A stretch of 64,000 nt of DNA, from the IMG/VR virus record IMGVR_UViG_3300032236_000747, positions 290,681-354,680 of that record; one strand, written 5' to 3'. Each line of letters starts with the position of its first letter. Positions within the stretch are counted from its first letter, which is position 1. Shown here piece after piece: positions 9,290 through 61,759 of the stretch. The notes beneath the pieces were generated by a model. That model had not been told where the DNA came from and made no database searches. It worked only from the letters and a program-made list of their open reading frames with translations. The translations under genes and the position numbers were made by a program.

Positions 9290-9300
9290 TAAATACTATC

Positions 9301-9576
9301 ATGAGAGCAAAAGAATTTACAATTAACATTCCTATCAACATTAAGATCAATGGTGATGGCGAGCCTGAAATCAGCACAAGTCAAGATACCGAAGCTGATG
9401 TAGATTCTAACCCTGTATTTGTTCCGCCTCTACAGCAACATTTAGAGCTACACAAAGCAGAACTAGGTAAAGAAAGCCCTGTCATTGACAAACTTACACA
9501 AGATAATGATATTGGCACAGAACCGGACGGAACCGAAGCACAGCTAGCTAGACTCAAGCAACTGATGGCCCGATAA
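9301..9576 (+). CDS. Hypothetical protein, putative internal head protein
   Basis: MRAKEF N-terminus; TAAATA-N5-ATG. Confidence 0.55.
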   Translation: MRAKEFTINIPINIKINGDGEPEISTSQDTEADVDSNPVFVPPLQQHLELHKAELGKESPVIDKLTQDNDIGTEPDGTEAQLARLKQLMAR

Positions 9577-12500: not shown

Positions 12501-15500
12501 CCCAGGGTTGGGGGACTACAGGATATGTAAGTACTATTGCTCGTATAAACATGCGAGCTCTACAAGATTTTACTGACACCGCCGCAGGCACAGGAATACG
12601 TTTTCAATTAACTCCTATAAACACAACTACAATACAAACTGTTACAGTAGACATCACTGCTACAGGTATAAGTTTTGTTGGTAACTCTATTGGCGGAATC
12701 ACATTCAGTAACAATGACAGACTAACTTACTTCCCAACACCTGTGGGACAAGCCGGCTTATATTTAAAGTCAGATGGTACTACAATGAGTTGGCAAACAG
12801 GAGGTGCTGGCGCCAAAGGTGATACCGGTACAGCAGCTACAATTACAATAGGTACTGTTACAGTTTCTACAACTACAGCAAGTGTAACCAATGTAGGTAA
12901 CTCTAGTAGTGCTATACTTAATTTTGTCTTACAACAAGGTCCACAAGGTATCCAGGGAGCTACCGGTAGCACAGGAACACAGGGACCCAAAGGCGATACA
13001 GGTACTACTGGCGCACAGGGCATACAAGGTATTCAAGGCATTCAGGGAGCAACCGGAACCAGTGCGACAGTTATGGTTGGACTAGTTACTACAGGTTCAA
13101 CAGCTCTAGTTACTAACACAGGAACAAGTGCTAACGCGGTACTTAACTTCCAAATTCCATGGATACCGGGCCCACAGGGCGCAACTGGTGCTACGGGAAG
13201 TACAGGTACACAAGGACCTAAAGGGGATACCGGAACACAGGGTATTCAAGGACCTATTGGGCCAACTGGAACATTTACAGGTAGTGTAGTTACTCTAGCA
13301 TCTGCTGATACTGCGGCACTGACTTATACATCATCAACTGGCATATTCTCATTCACTCCTAACAATGTCTATAAGACATTGTCTAGTTTAAGTGATGTTA
13401 ATGTTCCAGCACCCGGCAACAATCAAGTACTAACCTGGAGTACCGGCACTAATCGTTGGATTCCTACAACAGTAAACGGTGTTGGTGTTCCTATTACAGG
13501 TATTGCCTACTATGGTACATTCTACGACGTGGGCGCGGATCAAACAGCGCCACTGACAACCAGCAGTTATGTTGTAAGAATAGATCACACTGACGGTAGC
13601 AATGGCATCAGCATTGTTGACAATAATCAAATAACATTTGCCTACGGCGGAACTTATGAAGTAGAGTTTAGCATACAGTTCCAAAATACAGATACTAAAG
13701 ATGCCACTGTTAGTGTATGGTTTAGAAAGAACGGCGCAGACATAGCAGATTCAAACAGCATATTCACAGCGCCAAGTAAGCAAAACGGTAATGGATTCTT
13801 GATAGCAGTCACTCCGTTTATCGTCACAGTCAACGCCGGCGACTATGTACAGATTATGTGGTCAAGTGACAATACAGTAACCAAAATCGTCACAACAGCG
13901 GCTGGAACTACCCCAACTGTTCCACGCACACCGGGCGTTATTATCACAGTGGTGCCGGTTACCTCAGTGGTTATCCCAGGCACCGTTGAGAGTTTAACAG
14001 TAACGGGCAATGCCAGTGCCAATAACTTTATCTCAGCGTATCTGCCCATAGTGTCAAGTGGTACTACTACTGTGCTGTCTGTTACAAGTCCGCACTATAT
14101 ATCAGTAAGTGGTGTATCAACACAGACTATCAAACTGCCAAACGCTACCTTATTGACTGTAGGACAAAGTTACAAGATTGACAACAACTCAAGTGGCAAT
14201 GTTTACATACAAGATGCTACTGGTGCTCAGATTGGCGGTGCTCTGTTACCGGGTGCGGCCACTGAAGGTAGAGTTATTAATGTAGGTACAACAGCAGGCA
14301 CATGGGATGGTTGGAACTATGTTCCTGGCAATGTATCATTTGGCACAAGTCAGATGGTGTTTACTGGCGGGACCATTGTAGCCAGCACATTCACTGGTAG
14401 TTTAGTAGGTACTGCTACCACAGCAACCTACGCACAATCATTTAATACTGCGACTCTAGTAACTACTGCTGTTAGTGCTACTACTGCCACTAACGCTGGT
14501 TACGCATATTCATTTAATACAAACACAGTCGTAACTACAGCAGTTACAGCAACTAACGCTGGGTATGCCTACTCGTTCAACACATCAACCCTAGTATTGA
14601 AAGCAACTACAGCTACACTGGCACAAACTGTTACTGCGGCCGCACAGCCTGCTATCACAAGTGTAGGAACACTAACAAGTCTATCACTTCAGGGCAGTAT
14701 AACATTTAATGATGCCACTACACAATCTACAGCATGGACTGGTAGTACATATAGAATAATCAAAGTTGCTGACGGTTTTGGAGTAGGCCTACCATTCCAG
14801 TCTTATGTAACTGCTGATACCAGCACAGGCATTATTGTTTCCGCATTAACTGGTATTCCAGCAAGCCCTACATATAAAACTTGGACATTTGGGTTTGACG
14901 GAGTCTTAACATTCCCAGATAACTCAACACAAACAGTTGCGTGGAATACAAGCACAGCAGTTTATTATTCACAGATAAGGAATGCGCCTTCTACTACAGG
15001 CACAGCAGTATTCAATATTGTTAGTGCTACTAACATAACAGTTGGCGGAACAACAATACAAAACTTGTTTAGTGTATCAACAGCTACAGTGAGCAATACT
15101 GCTACTAGTCTTGTCTATAATACTAGCACCGGTGTTTATACATTTACACCATTTAGTCTAAACACCAGTACACTAATGGCTCGAGCTGTCACTGTTACAA
15201 GTTCAACACAAGCGGCTATTACCGCACTTGGTACATTAACGTCTCTATCAGTTAGCGGAGCATCAACAGTTAGTGGGCTTGCTACCTTTAACTATACAGG
15301 CGGTGGATCAACTTCAACTATTTCTGTCAGTGGGCAAAATAGCAAAGGTGGCGCACTATATCACGACTTCCTAAGTGCTACTAACGGGTTAGCCACTGCT
15401 ACCAATGCTACCAAATATTTCCGTCTAAACAACGTAGGCACCTTAGAAATATTGAATAGTGCTTATAATGCAACTGTATTCTCAGTAACTGATAACGGAT

Positions 15501-16525
15501 ATATTGCTATCAATGCGGCATCCGGTGTTTCAAACGGTTTGCCTGGTAATAATGCTATAGCGATGAATAACAACAGTTACATCTACGATGATGGTAACTA
15601 TCACCTTACAAGTAAGTCTGGTAGCATTTGGATCAATGCCAACGGTGGTAATGATGTTAATATAAACACACAAGTCCCTAGTGGTACTATGCCAGGCGGG
15701 TTGAATGTACAGGGTGCTATAACAAGTCAAGGCTCTGGTACAGCCGCTACATCGTTTATATCAGGTGTAAACGCATATAGTGGCGTAGCACTACAGCTGA
15801 CTCCAAACGGTACAGGTGCGGCAAACCAAGCTATTCGTGATACATCAAGTGCGGCAAGCACAATGTATTTTGACGTTAATACTGGTGGTAGTGCTCACGG
15901 CCAATTCCAATTTAGATCAAGCAATGCGTTTAGTCAACTCTTGGTTGTAAGTAATAGTGCCGTAACAGTTAACAGACAAATGTTGATAGGTGGTGGTAGT
16001 CAAGGCGCCTATGTTACTATTAACGGAACAAACACTTACAACATCAATGGGCCTTTTGGATACTTAAACGGTGGCGGCGCAGGCGCCATCAACAGCAGTG
16101 GATCAACGGGTAATCAAGGGTTTTCATTACAATGTAGTGGACGTATTCAAGCTAATGAAGTTGACGTTCCTTCAGACGAACGATTAAAAGACATACAGGG
16201 CACTATTCCTTTAGATAAGGCACTACAGTTTGTTCGAGCCGTAGATGGTATCTTGTATACTTGGAAGCCAGGATTTGGCGACAACGGATTAAAGTCAGGG
16301 TTTAATGCTCAAGGTGTATACAAAGCTGGATTTGATCATATGGTTGTTCCTGTGCCAAATGATCGTGTAGCGGGTTCAACTGATGCTGATGGATTTACAA
16401 GCCCAGATAAGTTCCAATTAAGTTTAAACTATCAAGAAGCTATCCCATATCATCACGAAGTTATCAAGCACTTGCTAGATCGTATTGAGCAGCTAGAAGC
16501 TACAGTAGCCAAGTTAACTAAATAA
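9599..16525 (+). CDS. Giant collagen-like tail fibre with C-terminal peptidase S74 intramolecular chaperone
   Basis: Several G-X-Y tracts (GPKGDTG repeats), duplicated modules, C-terminal SDERLKDI...GFNAQ...LNYQ and coiled coil. Confidence 0.9.
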   Translation: MAFIQKLFTTLQNYDNGDTRIGELNRIWYDSNRNAFYISDGQTEGGILIGGGGGGGTYTLLTATTTRLGGVRIGAGIQVDYRGVISVNTSTLAGPQGPKGDTGPKGDTGTQGSVGAQGDPGIGVPVGGVAGQVLAKIDGVDYNTYWVDQTGGTGNGSVIQSDIAPTPANTTTLWYDTVGGRSYVYYYGGWVDASPGIGGIPGPKGDTGTQGPTGLQGDIGPKGDTGTQGLIGPMGPKGDTGTRGLTGDIGPVGPKGDTGTQGLIGPTGPKGDTGTQGIQGPIGLTGNTGTQGIQGIPGEGVPVGGTAGQVLTKIDGVDYNTHWVDANFSSSTATAGVSDITAGTGTYVSANTGSVSIWVDPNVVEGTVAPASTASFWYDTNVGRLFIYYNGSWIDASPGTTGIPGPKGDTGTTGPTGLQGDIGPKGDTGTAATLVIGTVTLGTYTSVINVGDQYNAVFDFVLQQGPKGDAGLKGDTGTTGATGAQGPKGDTGTQGIQGIQGFQGIQGIKGDTGTTGATGATGSVGPKGDTGTQGIQGIQGPKGDTGTTGAQGIQGIQGIQGVTGSTGTQGPKGDTGSIGIATLNLGTGTYGTLTSQTLSLWIGQDVSATSNVTFNSVAISNLGSILSSQVNIDAFITVYTLTNVVDYSSTATLASGVYGNINGVQPPWTVFDLSPGPSGTPVSTIAINDKLTGAGIIPSTVEDRGTGTYASYVIVNLDLAGLGQIQPLVGAAFNLVRPLQKAGLDITTQNNTDIFLNSNGLGDVLVNTNILPVATNVSNLGSPDFRWKSLYVGPGTIYVLDETLGKDISIGARDGLLYVQNGAGLVVGEFTLIDNQIKIANPDRDIIIGTTTATGSVVLNRPIRVNTLAGQTSFSVDRLGLTTIHPLISMSSTQSALNIVGNTSGLQQPRNFNDTMLQITGADNTATRVSLDSFGTGTYPVIAGRQAGGTVASPSQTKLNDTLLRFSAQGWGTTGYVSTIARINMRALQDFTDTAAGTGIRFQLTPINTTTIQTVTVDITATGISFVGNSIGGITFSNNDRLTYFPTPVGQAGLYLKSDGTTMSWQTGGAGAKGDTGTAATITIGTVTVSTTTASVTNVGNSSSAILNFVLQQGPQGIQGATGSTGTQGPKGDTGTTGAQGIQGIQGIQGATGTSATVMVGLVTTGSTALVTNTGTSANAVLNFQIPWIPGPQGATGATGSTGTQGPKGDTGTQGIQGPIGPTGTFTGSVVTLASADTAALTYTSSTGIFSFTPNNVYKTLSSLSDVNVPAPGNNQVLTWSTGTNRWIPTTVNGVGVPITGIAYYGTFYDVGADQTAPLTTSSYVVRIDHTDGSNGISIVDNNQITFAYGGTYEVEFSIQFQNTDTKDATVSVWFRKNGADIADSNSIFTAPSKQNGNGFLIAVTPFIVTVNAGDYVQIMWSSDNTVTKIVTTAAGTTPTVPRTPGVIITVVPVTSVVIPGTVESLTVTGNASANNFISAYLPIVSSGTTTVLSVTSPHYISVSGVSTQTIKLPNATLLTVGQSYKIDNNSSGNVYIQDATGAQIGGALLPGAATEGRVINVGTTAGTWDGWNYVPGNVSFGTSQMVFTGGTIVASTFTGSLVGTATTATYAQSFNTATLVTTAVSATTATNAGYAYSFNTNTVVTTAVTATNAGYAYSFNTSTLVLKATTATLAQTVTAAAQPAITSVGTLTSLSLQGSITFNDATTQSTAWTGSTYRIIKVADGFGVGLPFQSYVTADTSTGIIVSALTGIPASPTYKTWTFGFDGVLTFPDNSTQTVAWNTSTAVYYSQIRNAPSTTGTAVFNIVSATNITVGGTTIQNLFSVSTATVSNTATSLVYNTSTGVYTFTPFSLNTSTLMARAVTVTSSTQAAITALGTLTSLSVSGASTVSGLATFNYTGGGSTSTISVSGQNSKGGALYHDFLSATNGLATATNATKYFRLNNVGTLEILNSAYNATVFSVTDNGYIAINAASGVSNGLPGNNAIAMNNNSYIYDDGNYHLTSKSGSIWINANGGNDVNINTQVPSGTMPGGLNVQGAITSQGSGTAATSFISGVNAYSGVALQLTPNGTGAANQAIRDTSSAASTMYFDVNTGGSAHGQFQFRSSNAFSQLLVVSNSAVTVNRQMLIGGGSQGAYVTINGTNTYNINGPFGYLNGGGAGAINSSGSTGNQGFSLQCSGRIQANEVDVPSDERLKDIQGTIPLDKALQFVRAVDGILYTWKPGFGDNGLKSGFNAQGVYKAGFDHMVVPVPNDRVAGSTDADGFTSPDKFQLSLNYQEAIPYHHEVIKHLLDRIEQLEATVAKLTK

Positions 16526-20460: not shown

Positions 20461-20565
20461 CCCACCTTAGGGCCGTTGTCGCTAACGGTTAGGACGAAAG
20501 TCCAGGCGTCACAAGGCGGCTGCTGCCGACCACATTACTTACGCCAGAGTATTGTGATAAGTGAG
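20461..20565 (+). ncRNA. Candidate structured RNA of unknown class
   Basis: GC-rich intergenic stretch; stems CCGTT/AACGG, GGAC-GAAA-GTCC, GGCGT/ACGCC, CGGC/GCCG; possible pseudoknot TCACAA/TTGTGA. Confidence 0.55.
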
Positions 20566-20579
20566 CAATAAATACTATT

Positions 20580-21863
20580 ATGAAAATACATCATCTCTTA
20601 AATGAAACTGTAGAAACTTATACTACTGTAGATGAGTTCGTGGACATTATGAAGGATTTTTTACCTTTGGCCATGCATCATCTTAAGATAGATGCGCTAC
20701 CTCACATTAGGTTAGAAAAGTATATCAAAGACTCACATCAGCCTACGTTTGGCAAATACGTTAACGAAGAAAATGTGATACACGTAGGCATTGAAAATCG
20801 TCACCCATTAGATGTTCTAAGAACACTAGCACATGAACTAGTACACTTTAAACAAGGAACAGAGAATAGATTAGATGCCAAGAGCGGCGAAACTGGCAGT
20901 CCTATAGAGAATGAAGCACACGAGGTAGCTGGTATTATCATGCGTCATTTTGGTAAAAGATATCCTCATTATTTTACAGACACAGCTATTACTATTTCCG
21001 AAGATTGGAACAAAGTTAATCACCACGATAAAACTAACGGCCTAAGTCGTAAAGCAGTCAAAGCCTATCGTCGTGAACATCCAGGTAGTAAACTACAAAC
21101 AGCAGTTACTACTAAACCTAGTAAGTTAAAGGCGGGTAGTAAGGATGCTAAACGCCGTAAAAGTTTCTGTGCTCGTATGAGTGGCAACAAAGGCCCAATG
21201 AAAAAGCCTAATGGTAAACCTACTCCTAAAGCATTGGCCTTGCGCCGTTGGAACTGTGAGAGCATTGAAGAAATGCGTCAGCTGATCGAAACAGCTGAAC
21301 AGGTTATCATGCAGGAAAAATGGAGCAAGAAGTATAAGAGTAGTATCAACTGCTCACATCCTAAAGGCTTTAGTCAACGTGCCCATTGTGCCGGTAAGAA
21401 GAAGCACAATGAAAGTCATGACGTTATGGAACATGTATGCCCTGATTGCGGTATGTGCCAAACACATGGTACACTTAATGAGATTAAGAAAGGCGCCAAA
21501 GACTCAAACGGCTTTACCAAGTGCTGGCCAGGACATCATGCCGCTGGTACTAAGAAAGGTAAAAATGGTGGACAGGTTCGTAACTGTGTGCCTAACGAAA
21601 GTGTGGCGGAAGGTGGTGGAGCTCAACAAGCAGCCATAGCTATTGCTAAACGTGAAAGCGGCAAGTATACCAAAGACGGCAAGCGAATAAAAGAAAACTT
21701 TGCTGACGGAAAGCATCCCGAAGACAAAGGCGACAGCAAACGCTATGGGGTTCCTACTAAAGCAAGCGTGAGCACACTACGCAAGGTAGCACATCAAGGT
21801 GGTCGTAAAGGACAACTAGCTCATTGGATGGCTAATATGAAAGCAGGCAAAGCCAAAAAATAA
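20580..21863 (+). CDS. Modular late protein: HExxH metallopeptidase-like module plus basic/Cys-His modules separated by x-x-E sites
   Basis: TLAHELVHFKQ; KRRKSFCARM, CSHPKGFSQRAHC, CPDCGMC, KCWPG..NCVP modules; LNE, ISE, MQE, LNE, VAE, IKE linkers. Confidence 0.7.
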   Translation: MKIHHLLNETVETYTTVDEFVDIMKDFLPLAMHHLKIDALPHIRLEKYIKDSHQPTFGKYVNEENVIHVGIENRHPLDVLRTLAHELVHFKQGTENRLDAKSGETGSPIENEAHEVAGIIMRHFGKRYPHYFTDTAITISEDWNKVNHHDKTNGLSRKAVKAYRREHPGSKLQTAVTTKPSKLKAGSKDAKRRKSFCARMSGNKGPMKKPNGKPTPKALALRRWNCESIEEMRQLIETAEQVIMQEKWSKKYKSSINCSHPKGFSQRAHCAGKKKHNESHDVMEHVCPDCGMCQTHGTLNEIKKGAKDSNGFTKCWPGHHAAGTKKGKNGGQVRNCVPNESVAEGGGAQQAAIAIAKRESGKYTKDGKRIKENFADGKHPEDKGDSKRYGVPTKASVSTLRKVAHQGGRKGQLAHWMANMKAGKAKK

Positions 21864-24966: not shown

Positions 24967-25248
24967 ATGGCATCAGTAGCAGAACGAGTAAGCGTGCTAG
25001 AAACGCAGGTATTAAACATAGACGAAAAAATTGACGACATCAAAGAAGATGTTAAACAAAATCATACAGATATCAAGACCCAACTTACTGATATGTATAA
25101 TGCGTCTTGCACCCAACACTCCGAGTTAGCTAAAAAAATAGGCGACATTGAAAAGTTTAAGAACAAATGGATGTATATGATCATTGGCGGTGTTGCAGTA
25201 CTAGGTTACCTAGCAGGACATTCGGGAATACTTAAAATACTTTCATGA
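24967..25248 (+). CDS. Coiled-coil protein with C-terminal TM helix (holin/XhlA-like, tentative)
   Basis: ERVSVLETQV coiled coil; WMYMIIGGVAVLGYLAG TM segment. Confidence 0.5.
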   Translation: MASVAERVSVLETQVLNIDEKIDDIKEDVKQNHTDIKTQLTDMYNASCTQHSELAKKIGDIEKFKNKWMYMIIGGVAVLGYLAGHSGILKILS

Positions 25249-25958
25249 GAGCCTACGAAATATTCCTAGAAGATGTAACTGATCAGATCCAACCTAATCA
25301 AGCTGTAGGTAGTGGACCTGGTAAGATTGCACAGACTCCAGGAAATAAAGCAGCAAAGCCTGCTATGCCTAGTGCTACAACAATAGCAAATGCTGCTCAA
25401 GGAGCAGGAACCACACCGGATGCTACACAACCGGTTGGACAAAAACAAATGATGGGACAAAATGTCCCTGGACAACAACAAACAGGATCTGCTACACAAG
25501 GAACTGTAGGTACTATGGGTACAGCAGGAAGACCAGGTACACCCGATCCCAAGAGTGGCATGACACAAACACCTGCTCAACAACAAAGTCAGTTACAAAA
25601 AGCGCAGAGTCAGCTACAGCAAAAACAACAACAAGATCAAATAGCTCAGAAAAAGACTGATCTAACCAAAGACCTTAATCAACTTAAAACTGTAGCACCT
25701 AGTATTAATGTTTCCAAGGATGCAGATGCTCTAACAAAACCAGCAGATGAAAGATCCCCACAGGACCTTAAAAACATGGCAGGTATCACGAATGATATTG
25801 CCAGCATCATTGGACAACAGAACGGAACACAACAACTAAAACAGTTGTTAATGAAAATGAAAACCCTCGATGCTCAAAAGCAACAAGCACAGCAAGCAGA
25901 TAATCAAGCAGAGTTAGATAGTCTATCTCAACAAAATACCCCAACTCAGGCTAGATAA
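25245..25958 (+). CDS. Gln-rich low-complexity putative internal head protein
   Basis: MRAYEIFLED N-terminus; Q/P/G-rich body. Confidence 0.55.
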   Translation: MRAYEIFLEDVTDQIQPNQAVGSGPGKIAQTPGNKAAKPAMPSATTIANAAQGAGTTPDATQPVGQKQMMGQNVPGQQQTGSATQGTVGTMGTAGRPGTPDPKSGMTQTPAQQQSQLQKAQSQLQQKQQQDQIAQKKTDLTKDLNQLKTVAPSINVSKDADALTKPADERSPQDLKNMAGITNDIASIIGQQNGTQQLKQLLMKMKTLDAQKQQAQQADNQAELDSLSQQNTPTQAR

Positions 25959-26642: not shown

Positions 26643-28052
26643 ATGATTACAAACGATTTAAACGCCAAGTTAACAGCGGCCAAACTTAATGAAAATATGT
26701 ACAAGAAGTTTGGCACAAAGATTAACTTTGACAAATACACGAGAGAAGAACTAGAAAACTATCGTAATCTTCTACGTACTAATATTCATCAAGTAGAAAC
26801 TAGCAGCAACTTTAATGATTTGTTAGCCAACGAAACATATCAAAAAGACAAATACATGATGGGTGTATTAAACACTAAGATCAAAGAGATGTTAGGTGAA
26901 GCTAGGATCCTATCAGAAAAGAGCAAAACACAGAAGCAAGCACGTACGATGGCAGCAGCCGCACACGATCCAAAGTTTGCTAAGAAAGTGGGAATCAAAC
27001 AAAGCGTGGCCAAGGAATTCAACAAGGCCGATACAGGAACTAAAAAATTGAGCCAAGCTATGAAAAACAAAAAAACAACCGAAGCCCTAAAAGGCAACCA
27101 ATATAAAATAGATGCCAACAAAAACGGAAAAATAGACGGCGACGACTTTAAAAAGTTACGTGCTAAAAAGACCGAAGGCGCAATGGACACAGTTAAGGCA
27201 GTAGGCAAGAAAGTTGCTGGCGCTGTTAACAAAGCCATCGGTCATGGAAGCGATGAGGAAATGCGCAAAGATCTACAGAAAAAAGTAGGAGTAGCACAAA
27301 CTGGTAAGAAACCAGCAGCTCCTGTCAAAGAAGCCTCTAAGAAAAAGAATGACGGCAATCTGGCCAACAATGCCAAACCATACGACAAAGTAACACGCGG
27401 TGATGTTATCTCCGGTCGCCTTGGTAAAGATGAAATGGGTGGCAAGAGGAAAACAACTATGAAAAAGAAAGCAACTGAATCACAACTAATCTTCCGTAAC
27501 CACGTTAAGATTGTTAATGAAAGTCTAGCATACTTGCTAAACGAAGATGAAGAAGGCAAAGCCAAAGCCATTACCGCTGCCAGTGATATGGTCAATGACT
27601 TTACAACATGGATGCAACGTGTTGGTCAATACCAAACTAAATCTATGATTGAACTAGCTGATAGCATCCGTGCTGAGTTTGGTCAAGCCGAAGCAGAAGC
27701 ATTTAAGAATGCAGTTGCTCCTGCTCTACAAGCTACACTAGAAACAATGACACAACAACGCGAAGCTATTAGTCATGCTGTTGCTGTGCTAGCAGGTGAA
27801 GCCAGCGACATGGACCAAATGGGTGGAATGGGCGGCGGCGAAGTTCCTGACATGACTGGCGGTGCCGATGAGTTCTCTAGCCCATCAGGACAAGACAGCA
27901 TGAATGCAGGCGACGAGTTTGGTGCCAGTGATGCTGCTGCAGGTGGAATGGAAACCAGCGGACGTGAACTACGTGAAAGCCATAAGCGTGCTGCTGCCAA
28001 GAGCCGTATTGCTGAATCACATGCCATCATGAGTATCCTAAGCGGAAAATGA
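26643..28052 (+). CDS. Putative prohead core/scaffold-like protein with many x-x-E sites
   Basis: LNE, LSE, TTE, KTE, VKE, ATE, VNE, LNE, LRE, IAE motifs separating basic segments; late promoter at 26613. Confidence 0.6.
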   Translation: MITNDLNAKLTAAKLNENMYKKFGTKINFDKYTREELENYRNLLRTNIHQVETSSNFNDLLANETYQKDKYMMGVLNTKIKEMLGEARILSEKSKTQKQARTMAAAAHDPKFAKKVGIKQSVAKEFNKADTGTKKLSQAMKNKKTTEALKGNQYKIDANKNGKIDGDDFKKLRAKKTEGAMDTVKAVGKKVAGAVNKAIGHGSDEEMRKDLQKKVGVAQTGKKPAAPVKEASKKKNDGNLANNAKPYDKVTRGDVISGRLGKDEMGGKRKTTMKKKATESQLIFRNHVKIVNESLAYLLNEDEEGKAKAITAASDMVNDFTTWMQRVGQYQTKSMIELADSIRAEFGQAEAEAFKNAVAPALQATLETMTQQREAISHAVAVLAGEASDMDQMGGMGGGEVPDMTGGADEFSSPSGQDSMNAGDEFGASDAAAGGMETSGRELRESHKRAAAKSRIAESHAIMSILSGK

Positions 28053-28435
28053 GATTATTTGAAGTAGAAGGCAACATTGTCAATGATCTTGTTGTCTTGT
28101 TAAGAAACCAGGTAGGCAGGACAGATAGCGTAAGTCATAACAAAGCTCCACAGACTTTAACGTATCCTGCTTTAGCCAGCCTTATGAACAATTTAGGTTA
28201 CCCTGGTATTACCAAAGATAGTTTAAAACAACTATACGATGGTAGTGATGAGCTTAAGAAGTTAATCAGAGATCCAAAACCAGCAGGTGAAGATCCTAAT
28301 GCCAACGCAGCCGACGTTGTCACATTAAAAACATCCGAAGAACGTACCAAAGATGAACCAGCTACAGCAGCCGGGGGCAAGAGTATAGACTCTATGGCTA
28401 AATCTGGTGCTAACTATAAACCCGAACTAAGTTGA
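28049..28435 (+). CDS. Hypothetical putative internal head protein
   Basis: MRLFEV N-terminus; ATGA overlap. Confidence 0.55.
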   Translation: MRLFEVEGNIVNDLVVLLRNQVGRTDSVSHNKAPQTLTYPALASLMNNLGYPGITKDSLKQLYDGSDELKKLIRDPKPAGEDPNANAADVVTLKTSEERTKDEPATAAGGKSIDSMAKSGANYKPELS

Positions 28436-34893: not shown

Positions 34894-35124
34894 ATGAATG
34901 CGATTGTATGGAGTAAGTATCACTGCCCTTTTTGCGACCAAGCAAAGGCATTGTTAAAATCAAAAGGATATACTATTGAAGAACGCAAGATCGGAGATGG
35001 CTATACCAAAGAAGAGTTGCTAGAAGCAGTTCCTAGCGCACGTACAGTACCACAAATATTTTTAGATGGTGCTCATGTTGGTGGATTTGATGAACTGAAG
35101 AGACATTTTAATACGGTGATCTAA
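34894..35124 (+). CDS. grxC: Glutaredoxin
   Basis: CPFC active site, TVPQIF, GGFDEL. Confidence 0.95.
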   Translation: MNAIVWSKYHCPFCDQAKALLKSKGYTIEERKIGDGYTKEELLEAVPSARTVPQIFLDGAHVGGFDELKRHFNTVI

Positions 35125-37486: not shown

Positions 37487-37515
37487 TTGACAACATTCCT
37501 TGATTGTTGTATAAT
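37487..37515 (+). promoter_or_regulatory. Sigma70 promoter for the tmRNA precursor
   Basis: TTGACA-N17-TATAAT perfect consensus. Confidence 0.9.
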
Positions 37516-37520
37516 AAAAG

Positions 37521-37586
37521 TTATTGCTGTATGAAGCAAAGAGAAAAGTGTTCTGGACGCGGGTTCGACTCCCGCCAGGTCCACCA
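37521..37586 (+). ncRNA. ssrA: Permuted two-piece tmRNA, acceptor piece
   Basis: T-arm GCGGG-TTCGACT-CCCGC, acceptor 3' strand CAGGTCC-A-CCA. Confidence 0.93.
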
Positions 37587-37597
37587 TAAGGAAGTTT

Positions 37598-37840
37598 GTG
37601 AAAGAGTATTACATAGTTAATGGTAAAAAGTGTAAAAGAGATTCATTGCAAGATGACCTCATTTGGTCCATGAAACAATCCGATAACACTTTCAAACATT
37701 ATTGGATAGACGAACAGCAAGGATTAGGAAACAGTCACGGTGGACAATATATGCCTCCGTGGATTATGAATCGTAATCGTTATGTTGTTGATGATTTTGG
37801 AACGGTTGTAAAATATCTTCCATACAAAGTTTCTTTATGA
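37598..37840 (+). CDS. 80-aa ORF inside the tmRNA intervening segment
   Basis: AAGGA RBS plus GTG right after CCA; stop ends 1 nt before tmRNA G1. Confidence 0.7.
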   Translation: MKEYYIVNGKKCKRDSLQDDLIWSMKQSDNTFKHYWIDEQQGLGNSHGGQYMPPWIMNRNRYVVDDFGTVVKYLPYKVSL

Positions 37841-37841
37841 T

Positions 37842-38030
37842 GGGCCTGCCATGGTTTCGACAGGGCAAAGAGTAACAGAGTGGACAGCAGGGCAAAGCAG
37901 AAGCCCTTAGGGTTGGGGATTCCCGGCCGTAGACGCAAAAAAAGTAAATGCAAACGACTCACAGTTTCTAATGGTTGCCTGATAAAGGCTTCCGGGGTAG
38001 GAAATACCTTGCAACAGAAAATAACAGAAC
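37842..38030 (+). ncRNA. ssrA: Permuted two-piece tmRNA, coding piece; tag ANDSQFLMVA*
   Basis: GGGCCTG pairs with CAGGTCC giving G3.U70; GGTTTCGAC; TAAAT-GCA resume at 37950; TGA TAA at 37980-85; 3' end approximate. Confidence 0.92.
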
Positions 38031-38049
38031 CCGCTTCGGCGGGTTTCTT
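38026..38049. terminator. Bidirectional Rho-independent terminator
   Basis: AACCCGC-TTCG-GCGGGTT between convergent transcripts. Confidence 0.85.
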
Positions 38050-38728
38050 ATGTTTTCTTAGAAGCCCATTGTTTAACTGCTGGATAGTATGTTGTAAACA
38101 GTTGATGACGTTTTTTGATTTCAGCAGCAGGCGCAGCTTTTCCATTAATGGCTCTTGTAACTGAAGCAGTATCAGCAAAGTCCTTTATACGTCTTTTAAC
38201 ATTTTGATCCCAAAACCATTTAGCAATCTTTGCCGCTTCGTGGGGATCTGCTGCCTTACTAGGATGTTCAACATAATATGATTCATCGCCATGCACGCCT
38301 GCGCCAGCAGCAATATAGTTACCCTTGCCTGTTAACTGAATGAATCCACGTCCGGCATATTCCAAAGCATCATTTGCGCCTTGGTTACCTGTGCTACGTG
38401 CATATTTGTGAGCTGCTTTATTAGGCCGACCTATCTCGCCGAGGTGTTTAAAGTTACCTGTTTCTGCGCTACACTGTGCTAGAAACTGTGCTAGTTCTGT
38501 TGGCTCGGTCATACCGCTGTTAATAGCATGTGAAGACAGTATTTTACGTGCTACATCGGCATCAACTTTTGGTGCTTGAACTAGTGGTTGCACTTTTGTA
38601 CTACGTGGATCTATTTTTTGGGGATGTTGAACAGGCTTGGCTTGTGCTATACCTGCTGCCATTGCGGCTGCTCCACCAAGGAATCCCCTGCGTGTTAAAT
38701 CTTCTCTAGTAATTTCGTATATTCGCAT
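38048..38728 (-). CDS. Glycoside hydrolase family 19 (endolysin/chitinase-like) with twin-arginine-like N-terminus
   Basis: FLAQCSAETG and YAGRGFIQLTGKGNY motifs; TRRGFLGG; TAAATA-N4-ATG. Confidence 0.88.
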   Translation of the reverse strand: MRIYEITREDLTRRGFLGGAAAMAAGIAQAKPVQHPQKIDPRSTKVQPLVQAPKVDADVARKILSSHAINSGMTEPTELAQFLAQCSAETGNFKHLGEIGRPNKAAHKYARSTGNQGANDALEYAGRGFIQLTGKGNYIAAGAGVHGDESYYVEHPSKAADPHEAAKIAKWFWDQNVKRRIKDFADTASVTRAINGKAAPAAEIKKRHQLFTTYYPAVKQWASKKT

Positions 38729-38757
38729 CAAGTATTTAGTTATGGATAAAAGATGAC

Positions 38758-50674: not shown

Positions 50675-50923
50675 ATGACCTACGCTGAATATTTCGACCT
50701 AGTAACCTATAAAGCAACATATCACCTAGGTGATAGAATCATAGGTAAGCATAATGGTATTCCATTTGTAGGCACTGTTGGCAATGATAGACAACTTAAT
50801 CCAACGGAAGGTCCACGTATTAGTGTTCATTTAGATTTGCCATTAAAGGTTGACGGAACAGTTAAATGTGTTATACTAGTTAAACACAAAGATGTTAAAC
50901 GTCTTAAAGAATTAAGCGTCTGA
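50675..50923 (+). CDS. Hypothetical SH3-like small protein
   Basis: 82 aa; last 8 nt overlap tRNA 5' end. Confidence 0.6.
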   Translation: MTYAEYFDLVTYKATYHLGDRIIGKHNGIPFVGTVGNDRQLNPTEGPRISVHLDLPLKVDGTVKCVILVKHKDVKRLKELSV

Positions 50924-50990
50924 GGCTAAGTGGTATTGCAAGGGCTTCTAAAACCCGAGACAGCAGGTTCGAACCCTGTCAGGCGCACCA
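50916..50990 (+). tRNA. tRNA with CUA anticodon (amber suppressor-like)
   Basis: 75 nt; GCGTCTG/CAGGCGC-ACCA acceptor; D-loop AGTGGTA; loop TTCTAAA; T-loop TTCGAAC; anticodon stem only 3 WC pairs. Confidence 0.75.
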
Positions 50991-53449: not shown

Positions 53450-53841
53450 GTATGCATCTACATCACCCATCCTTGTCTTATAATGGTAAGAAAAAAGGCA
53501 AGCAAAAGTTCCGCAATGCTGACGAGGCCGCAAGATCACGCGAGCTCGATGCTAGCTGGAAAGAAATGCAAAAGAAATGGGGAGTTGAAGCAGAAGAAAA
53601 GAAACGTAGTCGAGCAATGAATGCTGAACCGTTGACCTATAAGTTATCTGTTCCAGCTGGTCGTGCAACTAACTCTGCTATCCCTAGTAGAGACACAGGG
53701 CACCTTGGCACAGTTCGTTCTAAGGACATTCCTAAATACACCGGTACCAAAGTTATCGGTATCGGTACTATGCATAAATCAAACGCAGTACCTATCTTCA
53801 GCGATGAGGAAGCTATAGATATCAGTAAGATGCGACGATAA
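53446..53841 (+). CDS. Conserved T4-like phage hypothetical protein
   Basis: YTGTKVIGIGTMHKSNAVPIF motif. Confidence 0.7.
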   Translation: MSMHLHHPSLSYNGKKKGKQKFRNADEAARSRELDASWKEMQKKWGVEAEEKKRSRAMNAEPLTYKLSVPAGRATNSAIPSRDTGHLGTVRSKDIPKYTGTKVIGIGTMHKSNAVPIFSDEEAIDISKMRR

Positions 53842-53849
53842 ATATCCCT

Positions 53850-55199
53850 ATGAAACCATCATTCAACGACAAACTAATAGCATATCTAGTATTATTCAGT
53901 GGACTGGCGATTTCCGGTGTAGCAGAATATTACTCCATTATGGGCCTAATGGCCATCTACCCTGCTGCACTTATTCCTATTGTTATCATGGGTGTAGTGC
54001 TAGGCATTGGGAAGATTAGCGGAACTGTTTGGCTCAAACAAAACTGGGAATGGTCACCGTTCTTTCTTAAAGCATATGTGTTACCTGCTATTGTTGTCTT
54101 GATGTTGATTACAAGTTTAGGTGTATTTGGTTTCCTAAGTAAAGCACACAGTGATCAAAGTTTAGTTAGCGGTGATGTACTAAGTAAGATTGCGGTATAC
54201 GACGAAAAGATTAAGGTAGCAAAGGAAAATATCGATGCTAATCGCAAAGCTCTCAAACAGATGGATGAGTCTGTGGACCAAGTTATGGGTCGAAGTCAAG
54301 ACGAAAAAGGTGCGGACAAAGCGGTTGCGCTACGTAAAGGGCAGGCCAAAGAACGCACTCGATTACTTTCTGAGATTACAGCCGAACAGAAAGCTATTGC
54401 CCAGCTTAGTGAAGAACGGGCACCCATTGCCGCAGAAGTGCGTAAGGTGGAAGCAGAAGTTGGTCCGATAAAATACATTGCACACTTACTCTATGGAGAA
54501 AATCCAGATGCTAATATTCTTGAAAAAGCGGTTATTTGGGTCACTGTTCTTATTGTTATCGTTCTCGATCCTTTGGCTGTTGTCTTATTGTTAGCAAGTC
54601 AATACAGTTTCCAACGCTTCCGTGAATACGAAGAAAGTAGCTGGTTAGATGATCAAGCAGACGAGTTAACAGAAGCTTTTTATGTGGCAGATGTAGGAGA
54701 AAAACCTACAGCAGAAGAAAAAGTTCCTGAAGAGGAAGATCTCCTAGTTGAAAACGAACCAGAAAAGGCTTATCTAAAACAACCATTTGTGCATTTTAGA
54801 AATCTAACTCCTATGCCAGCGCCTTCAAATGATATTACATCTGGGTTTGGTAGGTCAGAGATTGTAGAGATTCCAGACATGGAACGTCCTGGCGATTACC
54901 TAACACCGCCCGACGATACTCCGAACTTTGAAGGTGTTAAGATAGACGGTGAGTGGGTACAAACAGGCCCAGCGATTGAGCCGGACCCATTTGAGGGCAA
55001 AGAATATGTAATGATGGATGGACAGCAAATGCATGTCAGTGCCGCTAGAACAGTACTTGCTCATAAAAATCGTGAAAACAGCGGATACGTTCAAAATGAA
55101 GAACAGGGCGAAGGCACTAAGTGGAACCGTGTTATCAGTGAAGCAGAATACAGAGACAAAATAAATGACAATAAAGATAACCCTAGTAACACCGCCTGA
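53850..55199 (+). CDS. Membrane protein with coiled-coil and acidic tail
   Basis: Three N-terminal TM helices, central coiled coil, further TM; TAAATA-N5-ATG. Confidence 0.75.
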   Translation: MKPSFNDKLIAYLVLFSGLAISGVAEYYSIMGLMAIYPAALIPIVIMGVVLGIGKISGTVWLKQNWEWSPFFLKAYVLPAIVVLMLITSLGVFGFLSKAHSDQSLVSGDVLSKIAVYDEKIKVAKENIDANRKALKQMDESVDQVMGRSQDEKGADKAVALRKGQAKERTRLLSEITAEQKAIAQLSEERAPIAAEVRKVEAEVGPIKYIAHLLYGENPDANILEKAVIWVTVLIVIVLDPLAVVLLLASQYSFQRFREYEESSWLDDQADELTEAFYVADVGEKPTAEEKVPEEEDLLVENEPEKAYLKQPFVHFRNLTPMPAPSNDITSGFGRSEIVEIPDMERPGDYLTPPDDTPNFEGVKIDGEWVQTGPAIEPDPFEGKEYVMMDGQQMHVSAARTVLAHKNRENSGYVQNEEQGEGTKWNRVISEAEYRDKINDNKDNPSNTA

Positions 55200-60018: not shown

Positions 60019-60242
60019 CCGCCGACTGGGGCGCCAAAGACAAATACAATGACTATCCTTACAAGATAGAAATATTTCCCATGGGCGGGCTCAAGGATAG
60101 TTGGGCACGTCAAGGTTGGTGTGCTGACAATGTAGGCGAAAGAGAAGAAGCCTGGGATTTTTACAGCGAACGATATGATCAGCAGGTATATGTATTTGCT
60201 AGACAGAAAGATGCTGTTAACTTTGCTTTAATATGGGTGTAA
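60015..60242 (+). CDS. Small protein, F-x-L-x-W C-terminal family
   Basis: Ends DAVNFALIWV. Confidence 0.65.
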   Translation: MTADWGAKDKYNDYPYKIEIFPMGGLKDSWARQGWCADNVGEREEAWDFYSERYDQQVYVFARQKDAVNFALIWV

Positions 60243-60243
60243 A

Positions 60244-60534
60244 GTGATCTCAAGTATTGTATGGGGAAGAAGTATTGGTTGGAATCTTGATTTTAGAAGT
60301 TCAAAGAAAAAAGGAATGGAATACACAATCATAGTAGATGGCCCAGGCTGTTATCCTTGGACCAAACATTTTGCTTGGCTTCCAGTTAAAACAATCACAG
60401 GTCTACGTGCTTGGGGTGTTACAGTTTACAAACGTAGGGTGTGGTTAGTGTGGGGCACAGGATTCCACATGGAACCACATGTAGAGTATGCTACATTATT
60501 TGAAGTACTAGCAGATGGCAGACGCGGTTACTAA
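60244..60534 (+). CDS. Small Trp-rich protein (FAWxPV family)
   Basis: KHFAWLPVK...EYATLFEVL; paralog of 60999. Confidence 0.65.
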   Translation: MISSIVWGRSIGWNLDFRSSKKKGMEYTIIVDGPGCYPWTKHFAWLPVKTITGLRAWGVTVYKRRVWLVWGTGFHMEPHVEYATLFEVLADGRRGY

Positions 60535-60790
60535 ACACCATAAAAAACTTAAAGGTACAATTCCACCTGTGGTCTTGCCACCGGGCGAGCATTTTGTTAT
60601 ATTAACTAAAGCAGACGTTGATGGAGAGCCGTGGTACACTGTGCGTATAAGCCCTAAAGTCCGAGATTGGTTAGTTAAACAACCTACTAATCAATGGTAT
60701 GAGCATTTTGGTAACAACCACTATAGGGTTGCGTGTACCTTTGACCTTAGTGAAAAACTATATACAACTATGTTGTTAACTTGGCTATGA
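60515..60790 (+). CDS. Small protein, F-x-L-x-W C-terminal family
   Basis: Ends LYTTMLLTWL. Confidence 0.65.
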   Translation: MADAVTKHHKKLKGTIPPVVLPPGEHFVILTKADVDGEPWYTVRISPKVRDWLVKQPTNQWYEHFGNNHYRVACTFDLSEKLYTTMLLTWL

Positions 60791-61002
60791 AAAAAGTAAC
60801 ACTCACAGATAAGTCTCCCAACGAAGTTATTGACATTGTTCGTGCTTTGCGAGAAGAAGGTCTAGTACAAGGCACTAACTTTGATTTTGCTTATCATCAA
60901 AGCAAATGGGACGAAATGATAGGAGAAATTCCTACGCAGGCTACGTTTACATTTTATAATGACAAGTATGCTACATTTTTTATATTAAAATATTGTAAAT
61001 GA
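60787..61002 (+). CDS. Small protein, F-x-L-K-Y C-terminal family
   Basis: Ends YATFFILKYCK; ATGA-coupled. Confidence 0.65.
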   Translation: MKKVTLTDKSPNEVIDIVRALREEGLVQGTNFDFAYHQSKWDEMIGEIPTQATFTFYNDKYATFFILKYCK

Positions 61003-61205
61003 AAAAAGAAATATTTGTTGCTAGGAAAATAGAAATACTATCTTGGAAAAAATGGTTTGCTTGGTATCCTGTAAAGATACACGGAAAAAGGGTATGGCTT
61101 AAAAATGTATATCGTCGTTGCATTAACACCTATGTTGATTACGATGATTGGAGTCGTTATGAGTATGGTACTTTATTTGATATATTGAAAGAAGACATAA
61201 CATGA
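60999..61205 (+). CDS. Small Trp-rich protein (FAWxPV family)
   Basis: KWFAWYPVK...EYGTLFDIL. Confidence 0.65.
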   Translation: MKKEIFVARKIEILSWKKWFAWYPVKIHGKRVWLKNVYRRCINTYVDYDDWSRYEYGTLFDILKEDIT

Positions 61206-61501
61206 AAGTTAACCCTAAAATAGAAGATGCTTTTCTTCCCATGTACGAAGATGATATTATTCCTCTTGAAGAAATAAAGAAAAAACGTGATCGATATTGG
61301 GCCATGTTGCGCAGAGCTAAAAACGAGTATTTAAGTCTAGTAGACGGCACAGAGTACAACGATGGTATTAATGGTTTCTATTATTTCATGCAGCAGAACT
61401 ACGGTCTTCAACCAGAGTTGATTGACGGCAACCTAGGATCAACGTATAATATAGTTGACGAAAAGAAATATCTATTGTTTTTACTAAAGTACGGATCATA
61501 G
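61202..61501 (+). CDS. Small protein ending in TAG, in frame with next ORF
   Basis: Ends KKYLLFLLKYGS-TAG-GCA-ACC-GCC-ATG. Confidence 0.7.
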   Translation: MKVNPKIEDAFLPMYEDDIIPLEEIKKKRDRYWAMLRRAKNEYLSLVDGTEYNDGINGFYYFMQQNYGLQPELIDGNLGSTYNIVDEKKYLLFLLKYGS

Positions 61502-61510
61502 GCAACCGCC

Positions 61511-61759
61511 ATGGAGTTAAAAATAAGTGAAGGTCGTGTATACGGTTCACGATATTATACAGTTGAAGTTGTTACTGGTCTGTTCTCCAGAGAAAAACTA
61601 ATAAAGATAGACGATGTAAAAAACTGGGTCACTGAAGCATTTGGCTCAACCTCTGCAAAAAGTATATTAGAACCCGGTAGCCGATGGTATTATACCTATG
61701 ATACTTTCTGGTTTCGTAATCAGAAAGATCTAACATTATTTGTGTTGAGATGGTCATGA
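61511..61759 (+). CDS. Small protein, LRWS family
   Basis: Ends KDLTLFVLRWS. Confidence 0.7.
   Translation: MELKISEGRVYGSRYYTVEVVTGLFSREKLIKIDDVKNWVTEAFGSTSAKSILEPGSRWYYTYDTFWFRNQKDLTLFVLRWS

Follow-up and report, generated by a model that had tools for sequence, protein, structure and literature searches.

Why does an uncultivated giant lake phage, which has an ordinary lysis enzyme, encode a second predicted cell-wall-cutting enzyme that begins with a short T4-like leader followed by a Tat-type export signal? The gene lies in the window, a stretch of 64,000 nucleotides (positions 290,681 to 354,680 of the 354,680-bp IMG/VR record IMGVR_UViG_3300032236_000747), and all positions below refer to the window unless stated otherwise. 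An earlier note, made from the sequence alone, had described a leaderless late gene with an internal-protein-like leader ending in x-x-E, an S/T-R-R-x-F-L twin-arginine motif, a hydrophobic stretch, an AxA site and a GH19 domain. This observation was confirmed, as each of these sequence elements was found in the predicted protein, with one correction to the leader site given below. The features of the locus are as follows.

38733..38739, minus strand: T4-late-promoter-like element CTAAATA, 4 nt upstream of the ATG, predicting a leaderless mRNA
38048..38728, minus strand: coding sequence from ATG, 226 aa plus stop, with leader, Tat-type signal, linker and GH19 domain (an ORF listing starts one codon earlier, at TTG 38731)
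38702..38728, minus strand: N-terminal leader, residues 1-9 (MRIYEITRE), a member of the M-[RK]-x-x-E-[FIV] tag family
38639..38701, minus strand: Tat-type signal peptide, residues 10-30, with T-R-R-G-F-L-G, a Gly/Ala-rich core and A-Q-A|K
38561..38638, minus strand: conserved linker, residues 31-56 (around D-P-x-S-T-K-V-Q-P-L-V), predicted to pack onto the domain
38051..38560, minus strand: GH19 catalytic domain, residues 57-226, with E89 (38462-38464), E98 (38435-38437) and the G-R-G-F-I-Q-L-T-G signature
38027..38046, both strands: bidirectional intrinsic terminator following the stop codon, shared with the convergent tmRNA gene, with an 8-bp stem and T-run on the plus strand and a 7-bp stem and T-run on the minus strand

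To determine whether the enzyme belongs to GH19, profile, sequence and structure comparisons were performed. The protein scored 27.8 bits against Pfam PF00182 (cut-off 25.5) and matched PHROG 181 'endolysin' with an E value of 4e-29, and solved GH19 endolysins matched by sequence (9ms7, E 3e-18). The AF2 model had a pLDDT of 87.8 (above 90 for residues 41-226, 74-95 over residues 31-60 and below 50 for residues 1-27), and its top Foldseek hits were 9ms7, 7r6s and 4ok7, with a probability of 1.00 to these and to the chitinase C entries. E89, E98, G126, R127, G128, Q131 and T133 were invariant in 26 aligned homologues, and the two glutamates are assigned as the acid/base pair from what is established for GH19. 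The protein is thus almost certainly a GH19 muralytic enzyme, with hydrolysis of peptidoglycan rather than chitin being inferred. No close DNA relative was found among 50,697 phage records, where only a chance-like match of 39 nt was obtained.

The Tat-type signal comprises the twin-arginine motif T12-R13-R14-G15-F16-L17, a Gly/Ala-rich hydrophobic core (G18-I27) and the AxA site A28-Q29-A30|K31. Pfam TAT_signal (PF10518) remained below its cut-off (14.4 vs 22.7), but NCBIfam TIGR01409 was above its cut-off (18.3 vs 16.7), and a six-frame scan of the whole 354,680-bp genome with TIGR01409 returned exactly one place, this one (22.5 bits, E 7.5e-5). The RRGFLG motif was conserved in 29 homologues, and all 14 de-replicated members of the class carrying the twin arginines (RR class) ended in a small-x-small-K site, with an uncharged core averaging 17.6 residues and a mean hydropathy of 1.27. 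Use of this signal by the host Tat system is considered probable, with dependence on TatABC and on the RR pair being inferred; no phage-encoded TatA was found.

The public gene call (P0001, 204 aa) starts at M23 and misses the leader and the RR motif. A cytoplasmic, signal-less product starting at M23 was therefore considered, since a gene caller chose this start and a GGAG lies 8 nt before the M23 codon. However, the 22 upstream residues are conserved as protein in orthologues of 66-79% identity, with synonymous changes in the Arg codons, M23 is absent in several orthologues (P0002, P0007), the GGAG is simply the Gly-Gly-Ala codons, and the late-promoter-like element is conserved in front of the long start, making the short product the least likely of the explanations considered. 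No Shine-Dalgarno sequence precedes the ATG. The orthologues at related loci L027 and L028 keep CTAAATA-N4-ATG, and that at L029 has ATAAATA-N5-ATG. Genome-wide, 18 genes have [AT]TAAATA 4-5 nt before their ATG, with the spacing peaking at 5 nt (13 genes) and 4 nt (5 genes). Promoter function of this element is inferred from T4 (TATAAATA). Among the matching sequencing runs, all except one probable source run, six RNA libraries included, contained only pieces of the neighboring tmRNA, and no contig of the four runs mapped spanned the GH19 gene (only trace depth, under 6, in one bin), giving no expression or 5'-end evidence.

Is this gene the endolysin of the phage? The earlier note had left two readings open, a holin-independent, Tat-exported endolysin, or a packaged protein whose Tat signal is exposed by the prohead protease, and its interpretation is partly supported. 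The first reading is weakened, since a complete lysis cassette with its own signal-less GH19, an Rz-like protein and an Rz1-like lipoprotein (a spanin-like pair) and candidate holins lies about 270 kb away (G000:C1:60149-62637, in coordinates of the phage genome). The neighbors of the present gene are instead a tmRNA gene and sigma-70-driven small ORFs, indicating that it is not the endolysin of that cassette. In four related loci examined with Rfam, no tmRNA was found next to the orthologues, so the tmRNA neighborhood is not conserved. For host inference, a 36-nt pattern from the tmRNA acceptor piece found nothing, and a 28-nt pattern hit 19 genomes of many phyla, which is uninformative.

A Tat-exported accessory lysin of the producing cell, however, remains the main rival, although a doubtful one. 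In this view the full-length precursor would be made late, exported by Tat without any capsid step and released by signal peptidase, weakening the wall independently of the holin, and the leader would simply be the n-region of the signal or have another role shared by late proteins. This is consistent with the complete, N-terminal position of the signal in this protein, with a gene that looks like a late, monocistronic unit, and with the signal-peptidase-type site kept in all 14 RR-class members. Long n-regions are normal in Tat signals, and a 9-residue acidic extension is within their normal range, so the precursor could be exported in the producing cell without any cleavage. On the other hand, unregulated export of an active muralytic enzyme would defeat the timing given by the phage's own holin-endolysin-spanin cassette, and this rival does not explain the three observations on leader, fusions and cleavage-like sites that follow.

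The first of these is that the leader is a portable tag. The pattern M-[RK]-x-x-E-[FIV] stood at 11 of 594 ORF starts of this genome against 4 of 2230 internal Met (P 2e-8), and MR..EF occurred 7 times at starts and never internally. The ORFs carrying it are unrelated, often of low complexity, and about ten of them lack a signal. Most GH19 homologues also start with the pattern, and it was observed in related IMG/VR contigs, partly in tandem arrays. Three further leader-bearing ORFs lie in the window, none with a family hit.

9301..9576, plus strand: ORF of 91 aa, starting MRAKEF, with ATAAATA-N5-ATG upstream
25245..25958, plus strand: ORF of 237 aa, starting MRAYEI, then F-L-E|D, Gln-rich and of low complexity
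28049..28435, plus strand: ORF of 128 aa, starting MRLFEV

Pfam and PHROGs searches of ten leader or leader-like ORFs gave no hits, except for one borderline leader-like late protein (starting M-K-T-I-E-I), whose homologues are annotated as virion structural proteins, and a 479-aa HExxH-bearing ORF had no match in the phage collection. The idea that the leader is a nucleotide-level feature of leaderless mRNAs was rejected, since the Arg, Glu and Phe codons vary, only some of the 18 leaderless genes carry the tag, and several tagged genes are not leaderless. The leader resembles the N-termini of the T4 internal proteins, as read from NC_000866: ipII and ipIII start M-K-T-Y-Q-E-F-I-A-E and ipI starts M-K-T-F-K-E-F-T-S-T, while ORFs here start M-R-A-K-E-F-I-I-K-E, M-R-A-K-E-F-T-T-S-K and the like, although the E-F is shifted by one residue relative to T4. 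In the cultured relatives XbC2, SCTP-2, ph0011 and PA5oct the leader pattern was at background level only, so no virion proteome can be transferred. That the leader is a head-targeting propeptide is judged somewhat more likely than not.

In addition, the phage encodes a prohead protease of the T4 gp21 family (G000:C1:141516-142142; Peptidase_S77, PF03420, 90 bits; PHROG 207, E 5e-58), located in a module ordered portal, small protein, acidic protein, protease, scaffold-like protein, major capsid protein. A predicted complex of this protease with residues 1-45 gave a score of 0.00, that is, no answer, which is not evidence either way.

The second and third observations come from the homologues, in which the signal-like segment often lies 100-170 residues inside the protein, behind GNAT, NUDIX, ART (ART-PolyVal), DUF5661 or HExxH domains. 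The twin-arginine signal is N-terminal here (RR at residues 13-14) but internal, at residues 104-140, in the homologues P0028, P0012, P0045 and P0010, with the Tat model scoring 22.1 bits at residues 104-124 of P0028. A [LIV]-x-E site precedes the segment in fixed register in 39 of 46 distinct contexts, namely 11 of 14 in the RR class and 28 of 32 in the W class, against a background of 1.15% per position, but these counts are not independent events, because the module is inherited as a unit. The 10 residues ending at that Glu are acidic, with a net charge of -1.4 (RR class) and -3.5 (W class). At this register the present protein has T-R-E (residues 7-9), lacking an aliphatic P3, and its only canonical site, I3-Y4-E5, lies inside the leader. 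Internal twin-arginine signal-anchors work in Rieske proteins, so the fusions do not strictly need a protease.

Most homologues carry the W-class segment without RR, and RR and W swapped at least 3-5 times on the GH19 tree. The W-class segment is too weakly hydrophobic (mean hydropathy 1.0) to be an obvious Sec signal, and only 9 of 32 have a clear small-x-small-K end. The prevalence of the W-class segment and these swaps leave room for an entry enzyme released straight into the periplasm, which would be packaged, ejected first through the tail tube and digest peptidoglycan locally for penetration, with the Gly/Ala-rich segment inserting into the inner membrane on its own and the twin arginines being incidental. 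Gly/Ala-rich segments resemble glycine-zipper membrane helices, and no T4-lysozyme (PF00959) or SLT (PF01464) domain was found anywhere in the genome, so no common tail lysozyme is evident, although a tail lysin of a family outside this search (M23, amidases, GH108) may exist. This reading is unlikely, because the RR class matches the full Tat consensus, not just two arginines, passes a curated model and keeps the signal-peptidase-type site in 14 of 14 members. A SAR-like or signal-anchor enzyme, held inactive at the membrane by an uncleaved tether until depolarization, is less likely still. SAR endolysins are Gly/Ala-rich, and the segment has a similar composition with low hydropathy (1.0-1.3) over 17-20 uncharged residues, but in this protein the uncharged core is only about 15 residues, it is preceded by a textbook Tat motif and followed by AQA|K, no pinholin is adjacent, and the leader and the fusions remain unexplained.

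The second reading of the earlier note, packaging with exposure of the signal by the prohead protease, thus gains comparative support from the tag, the gp21-type protease, the upstream fusions and the fixed [LIV]-x-E site. "Masking" is not shown for this protein, since nine extra residues need not block recognition by Tat. What the sequence itself shows is a gene that looks like a single-gene late unit of a T4-like-headed jumbo phage, encoding a second GH19 enzyme whose N-terminus joins a clade-specific 9-residue leader to a complete Tat-type signal peptide and which is not the lysis-cassette endolysin. Packaging, cleavage, ejection, Tat-dependent export and peptidoglycan hydrolysis are inferred. 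In the favored model, the leader would work like the T4 capsid targeting sequence and bring the precursor into the prohead core late in infection, the gp21-type protease would cut after a Glu of the leader (E5 or E9), leaving a protein that begins with the Tat signal, and after injection the protein would refold and be exported by the host TatABC system, with signal peptidase cutting after A30 and the free GH19 domain acting on peptidoglycan from the periplasmic side early in infection, although no benefit of such early hydrolysis is established. Multi-domain relatives would be cut at the [LIV]-x-E junction, releasing a cytoplasm-acting enzyme (ART, NUDIX, GNAT or HExxH) and a periplasm-bound GH19 from one packaged polypeptide. 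The whole chain is given a probability of about 0.4.

A wider and more doubtful reading is that an uncultivated clade of lake jumbo phages marks its injected cargo with the T4-like tag and places prohead-protease sites directly in front of cryptic host-export signals, so that one polypeptide is split in the capsid and its wall-cutting part is sent back out to the periplasm by the Tat (or another) export pathway of the new host. This would be an inside-out route for a virion-borne muralytic enzyme, not described for any phage. If the reading is true, this would be the first natural case of a phage muralytic enzyme routed through Tat, a third export route beside holin holes and Sec (signal-peptide and SAR endolysins). 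It would also show that capsid maturation proteolysis can work as a switch that arms a host-targeting signal, so that injected proteins could be addressed to compartments other than the cytoplasm. Furthermore, the easily recognized tag (M-R-x-x-E-F at the start, then [LIV]-x-E) would allow the injected protein set of a whole uncultivated jumbo-phage clade to be read from sequence alone, including ART, NUDIX, GNAT, peptidase-like and kinase-like candidates for host takeover or counter-defense. In practice, public gene calls truncate this gene at M23 because the mRNA is, by prediction, leaderless, and such N-terminal signals are therefore systematically missed in metagenomic annotation.

Among known systems, the closest are the T4 internal proteins IPI, IPII, IPIII and Alt, with their capsid targeting sequence (CTS) and gp21 processing. 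They share with the present case a short conserved N-terminal tag on unrelated, fast-evolving, often tandem late genes, with a core M-[KR]-x-x-(x)-E-F-[IT] often followed by x-E and a small residue, together with a gp21-family protease, a T4-like head gene module and, in the relatives, cargo-type enzymes such as ART. They differ in that the E-F here is one residue closer to Met1 and that no T4 internal protein is known to carry an export signal or a muralytic domain, and packaging of the present protein is only inferred. In the giant-phage ejection protein SPN3US gp47, removal of a propeptide by the prohead protease at an x-X-E site leaves a hydrophobic segment (an N-terminal transmembrane helix) at the new N-terminus of a protein thought to act at the host membrane (PMC5694885). 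That propeptide, however, has 111 residues, the helix is plain, with no Tat motif and no enzyme domain, and the phage belongs to a different lineage whose protease prefers A-X-E.

Signal-peptide endolysins (Lys44 of phage fOg44) and SAR endolysins (P1 Lyz, R21) likewise are muralytic enzymes that reach the wall through a host export pathway rather than through a holin hole, but they use Sec, are the lysis endolysin of their phage and sit with holin or pinholin genes, whereas this protein has a Tat-type signal, stands alone, and has a separate classical cassette in the same genome. No natural Tat-dependent phage endolysin was found in the literature on endolysins and the twin-arginine pathway, only part of which was checked for it. 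In polyvalent proteins of phages and conjugative elements (Iyer et al. 2017, PMC5512222), a design proposed for proteins delivered with the DNA, several effector domains are joined in one polypeptide, as in the relatives that combine ART-PolyVal, NUDIX, GNAT or peptidase-like domains with a wall-degrading domain, while the present protein has a single catalytic domain. The leader-site-signal module is not described in that paper, which does not contain the words 'signal peptide', 'transmembrane', 'chitinase' or 'leader', and a jumbo-phage overview does not mention such a module. Finally, the GH19 phage endolysins with solved structures (PWe2 9ms7, SPN1S 4ok7, KTN6 gp46 8p8e) share the fold and the catalytic signature, but in the alignments these chains are matched from near their own N-termini (for example residue 14 of 9ms7) with no leader or signal segment aligned, and the 26-residue conserved linker is specific to the clade of the present protein.

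The 354,680-bp IMG/VR virus record, of which bases 290681-354680 were analyzed, is rated as complete by CheckV and has a G+C content of 40%. No cultured phage was close to it at the DNA level. The prohead protease gene was distantly similar (65-69% over about half its length) to those of Salicola phage SCTP-2, Escherichia Asteriusvirus phages, Xanthomonas XbC2 and Pseudomonas PA5oct, indicating that the phage belongs to the broad group of jumbo myoviruses with T4-like heads. No alternative genetic code was needed. One sequencing run contained nearly the whole stretch and may be its source. Of the four other runs compared, three are labelled freshwater or lake water, and they contained only the tmRNA pieces. 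Other genes in the window include a glutaredoxin-like small ORF with a C-P-F-C motif (34894-35124, plus strand), which is ordinary for large T4-like phages, and a tRNA (50916-50987, plus strand) called by Rfam (46 bits) but not by ARAGORN.

The gene under study encodes 226 aa, and the sequence elements that the earlier note had described, a leader, a twin-arginine motif, a hydrophobic stretch, an AxA site and a GH19 domain, were all confirmed. The gene and its parts are as follows:
38048-38728, minus strand: coding sequence of 226 aa
Residues M1-E9: leader
Residues T12-R13-R14-G15-F16-L17: twin-arginine motif
Residues up to I27: Gly/Ala-rich core
Residues A28-Q29-A30, followed by K31: AxA site
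Residues 75-176: GH19 domain as placed by Pfam, above its gathering score

The GH19 assignment was supported by PHROG 181 'endolysin' (E 4e-29) and by sequence matches to solved GH19 endolysins (9ms7 at E 3e-18, 4ok7 and others). A structural model built on 26 homologues was confident from residue 41 onward and disordered for residues 1-27, and a Foldseek search with it returned only GH19 endolysins and chitinases. E89, E98 and the G-R-G-F-I-Q-L-T-G signature were invariant. For the Tat signal, the Pfam TAT_signal model was below its cut-off, while the curated NCBIfam model TIGR01409 was above its cut-off (18.3 vs 16.7 bits). When TIGR01409 was run over all six frames of the genome, this gene was the only place found (E 7.5e-5), so the Tat motif is more than chance.

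No Shine-Dalgarno sequence was found before the ATG, and CTAAATA lies 4 nt upstream. The two closest orthologous loci keep CTAAATA-N4-ATG, and a third has ATAAATA-N5-ATG. Across the genome, [AT]TAAATA stands exactly 5 nt (13 genes) or 4 nt (5 genes) before an ATG that opens a long frame, with no Shine-Dalgarno sequence, examples in the window being 9285-9303, 20564-20582 and 53834-53852. This is the spacing at which a T4-type late promoter (TATAAATA) would start the mRNA at the A of the ATG, and leaderless late genes appear to be a rule in this phage. A bidirectional terminator follows the stop codon, and two near-perfect sigma-70 promoters drive the flanking plus-strand units. The description of the gene in the earlier note as a leaderless late gene is thus well supported as a prediction from sequence. 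The public gene call (homologue entry P0001) starts at M23, behind a GGAG formed by Gly-Gly-Ala codons, and drops the leader and the RR motif; gene callers may mis-start other leaderless genes of this phage in the same way. Translation from M23 only is considered very unlikely, since residues 1-22 are conserved at the protein level, with synonymous changes in the Arg codons, which speaks for the long form.

The neighboring unit, convergent with the GH19 gene, is a permuted (two-piece) tmRNA gene which shares the terminator:
37487-38046, plus strand: permuted tmRNA gene
37487-37515: sigma-70 promoter, matching at 12 of 12 positions
37525-37982: Rfam RF04321 match, 106.9 bits
37598-37840: ORF of 80 aa filling the intervening segment

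ARAGORN reads the tag peptide as A-K-K-V-N-A-N-D-S-Q-F-L-M-V-A. In the four other sequencing runs (DNA and RNA libraries), contigs matched the two conserved pieces and skipped the roughly 250-nt middle. Host inference from the tmRNA gave no result.

Outside the window, at 60149-62637 of the genome of this phage (G000:C1; locus L012, 2149-4637), a canonical lysis cassette was found, consisting of an Rz-like membrane protein with a coiled coil, an overlapping small Rz1-like lipoprotein with an L-L-S-G-C lipobox, a 210-aa signal-less GH19 endolysin (PHROG 181, E 4e-75) and three small membrane proteins that could be holins. The host is therefore Gram-negative, and the phage has the usual three-step lysis set. 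The gene under study is a second GH19 and not the endolysin of this cassette. The main rival to the reading presented below, and only somewhat less likely than it, is that the gene encodes a Tat-exported accessory lysin acting in the producing cell. In addition, no T4-lysozyme or SLT domain was found anywhere in the genome, in a search that did not cover other lysin families; direct periplasmic release of the enzyme for entry is a smaller and doubtful alternative.

The leader is a portable tag. Eleven ORFs of this genome begin with M-[RK]-x-x-E-[FIV], which is 11 of 594 ORF starts against 4 of 2230 internal Met (P 2e-8), and the strict form MR..EF occurs 7 times at starts and never internally. 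The tagged proteins are unrelated to one another, and most are small, charged or low-complexity and match no Pfam or PHROG family. Two pairs are adjacent in tandem. One tagged 91-aa ORF (9301-9576, plus strand) lies immediately before a 2308-aa ORF (9599-16525, plus strand). Another tagged protein of 479 aa (G000:C1:258376-259815, locus L007) has a C-terminal H-E-L-R-H motif of the HExxH type and is metallopeptidase-like; it had no Pfam or PHROG hit and no match in 50,697 phage records, and the HExxH domain fused to GH19 in the homologues P0010, P0012 and P0018 may be a counterpart. The codons for Arg, Glu and Phe vary, and some tagged genes are leaderless while others are not, indicating that the constraint is on the protein.

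Of the first 120 GH19 homologues, about 85% begin with the same tag whatever follows it. Related IMG/VR contigs carry 3-8 tagged genes each, and some are in tandem arrays of five within 5 kb, at locus L127 (831-5280; G003:C1:26830-31280) and locus L126 (G002:C1:86000-95000). One 373-aa member has a protein-kinase-like G-x-G-x-x-G...K loop, and this layout recalls the plastic internal-protein loci of T4-like phages. The tag was not observed in this way in cultured relatives. In the T4 genome (NC_000866), ipII and ipIII begin with M-K-T-Y-Q-E-F-I-A-E-A and ipI begins with M-K-T-F-K-E-F-T-S-T, while ORFs of this phage begin with M-R-A-K-E-F-I-I-K-E-A, M-R-A-K-E-F-I-V-E-R, M-R-A-Q-E-F-T-K-E-A and M-R-A-K-E-F-T-T-S-K. 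The resemblance is close, with a one-residue shift. In T4, these 10-20 residues target the internal proteins to the prohead core and are then removed by gp21 (PMC5694885). T4 cuts after [LI]-x-E (Black et al. 1994), and the T4, phiKZ and SPN3US proteases all cut after Glu (PMC5694885). This phage encodes a Peptidase_S77 (gp21-family) protease in a module ordered portal, 87-aa protein, acidic 356-aa protein, protease, 363-aa scaffold-like protein and major capsid protein, which is the order of T4 genes 20-67-68-21-22-23.

To further examine the module, the architecture of the homologues was compared. It consists of the tag, an optional N-terminal domain, an acidic stretch ending in [LIV]-x-E, either D-[LIM]-[ST]-R-R-G-F-L-G (RR class) or [GD]-W-[KR]-[DNS] (W class), 15-20 Gly/Ala-rich uncharged residues, often a small-x-small-K site, a linker and GH19. 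The optional N-terminal domains include GNAT, NUDIX, ART-PolyVal, DUF5661 and an HExxH domain, which act in the cytoplasm, and in such proteins the Tat motif is internal, for example at residues 104-124 of the homologue P0028 (22.1 bits). A sub-family (homologues P0083-P0110; loci L039, L047, L057 and L079) has, behind the tag, a K/R-rich run followed by a Gly/Tyr-rich low-complexity stretch (A-A-Y-G-P-G-P-x-G-G-Y-G-Y) before the W-class segment.

De-replication of the 12 upstream residues left 46 distinct contexts. In 11 of 14 RR-class contexts, [LIV]-x-E stands exactly 4 residues before the first Arg, and in 28 of 32 W-class contexts it stands exactly 2 residues before the Trp, against a background of 1.15% per position. 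P3 is always aliphatic, P2 varies freely and P1 is Glu, which is the pattern of a T4-type site. These counts are not independent events because the module is inherited as a unit, but it is kept next to many different upstream domains. The 10 residues ending at that Glu are acidic (net charge -1.4 in the RR class and -3.5 in the W class), which is the wrong charge for the start of a signal peptide unless they are removed.

On a GH19-domain tree, the RR and W forms changed at least 5 times (3 forced by well-supported branches), and the module moved between N-terminal and internal positions at least 14 times. The two forms therefore seem to serve the same end. The RR class is a complete Tat signal, with a small-x-small-K end in 14 of 14 and a mean hydropathy of 1.27. 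The W class, which could not be assigned to a known pathway, is weaker, with a mean hydropathy of 1.0 and such an end in 9 of 32. That the hydrophobic segment of the protein under study is a SAR-like tether is another unlikely alternative.

The reading that accounts for most of these facts is that the tag brings the precursor into the prohead, where the protease removes it and, in fusions, also separates the domains. The trimmed protein, now beginning with an export signal, would be ejected with the DNA into the cytoplasm, as T4 internal proteins and Alt are, exported by Tat and released by signal peptidase, so that it acts on peptidoglycan early in infection. The interpretation in the earlier note, which left open either a Tat-exported endolysin or a packaged protein whose Tat signal is exposed by the prohead protease, is thus partly supported. 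The family, signal, tag and cassette assignments rest on the sequence analysis itself, whereas late transcription, packaging, proteolytic trimming, ejection, Tat-dependent export and activity on peptidoglycan are inferred, without proteomic or expression data. The target has T-R-E at the register of the family, and its only canonical site (I-Y-E) lies inside the tag. In addition, a 9-residue extension need not hinder Tat, internal twin-arginine signal-anchors work in nature (Rieske proteins), and no advantage of early wall hydrolysis is known. The whole chain therefore remains tentative, with a probability of about 0.4. A precedent for the unmasking step exists in SPN3US, where propeptide removal at A-L-E-111 leaves an N-terminal transmembrane helix on the ejection protein gp47 (PMC5694885).

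Compared with known systems, no natural Tat-routed phage lysin was found in the literature, although only a small part of the papers retrieved was checked for the term. The polyvalent-protein paper (Iyer et al. 2017, PMC5512222) does not mention a signal peptide, transmembrane segment, chitinase or leader, and a jumbo-phage overview does not mention twin-arginine, signal peptide or chitinase. GH19 phage lysins, Tat signals, and the T4 CTS with gp21 processing are each known, while their combination is not, and this combination would be a striking one if the chain of packaging and re-export holds.
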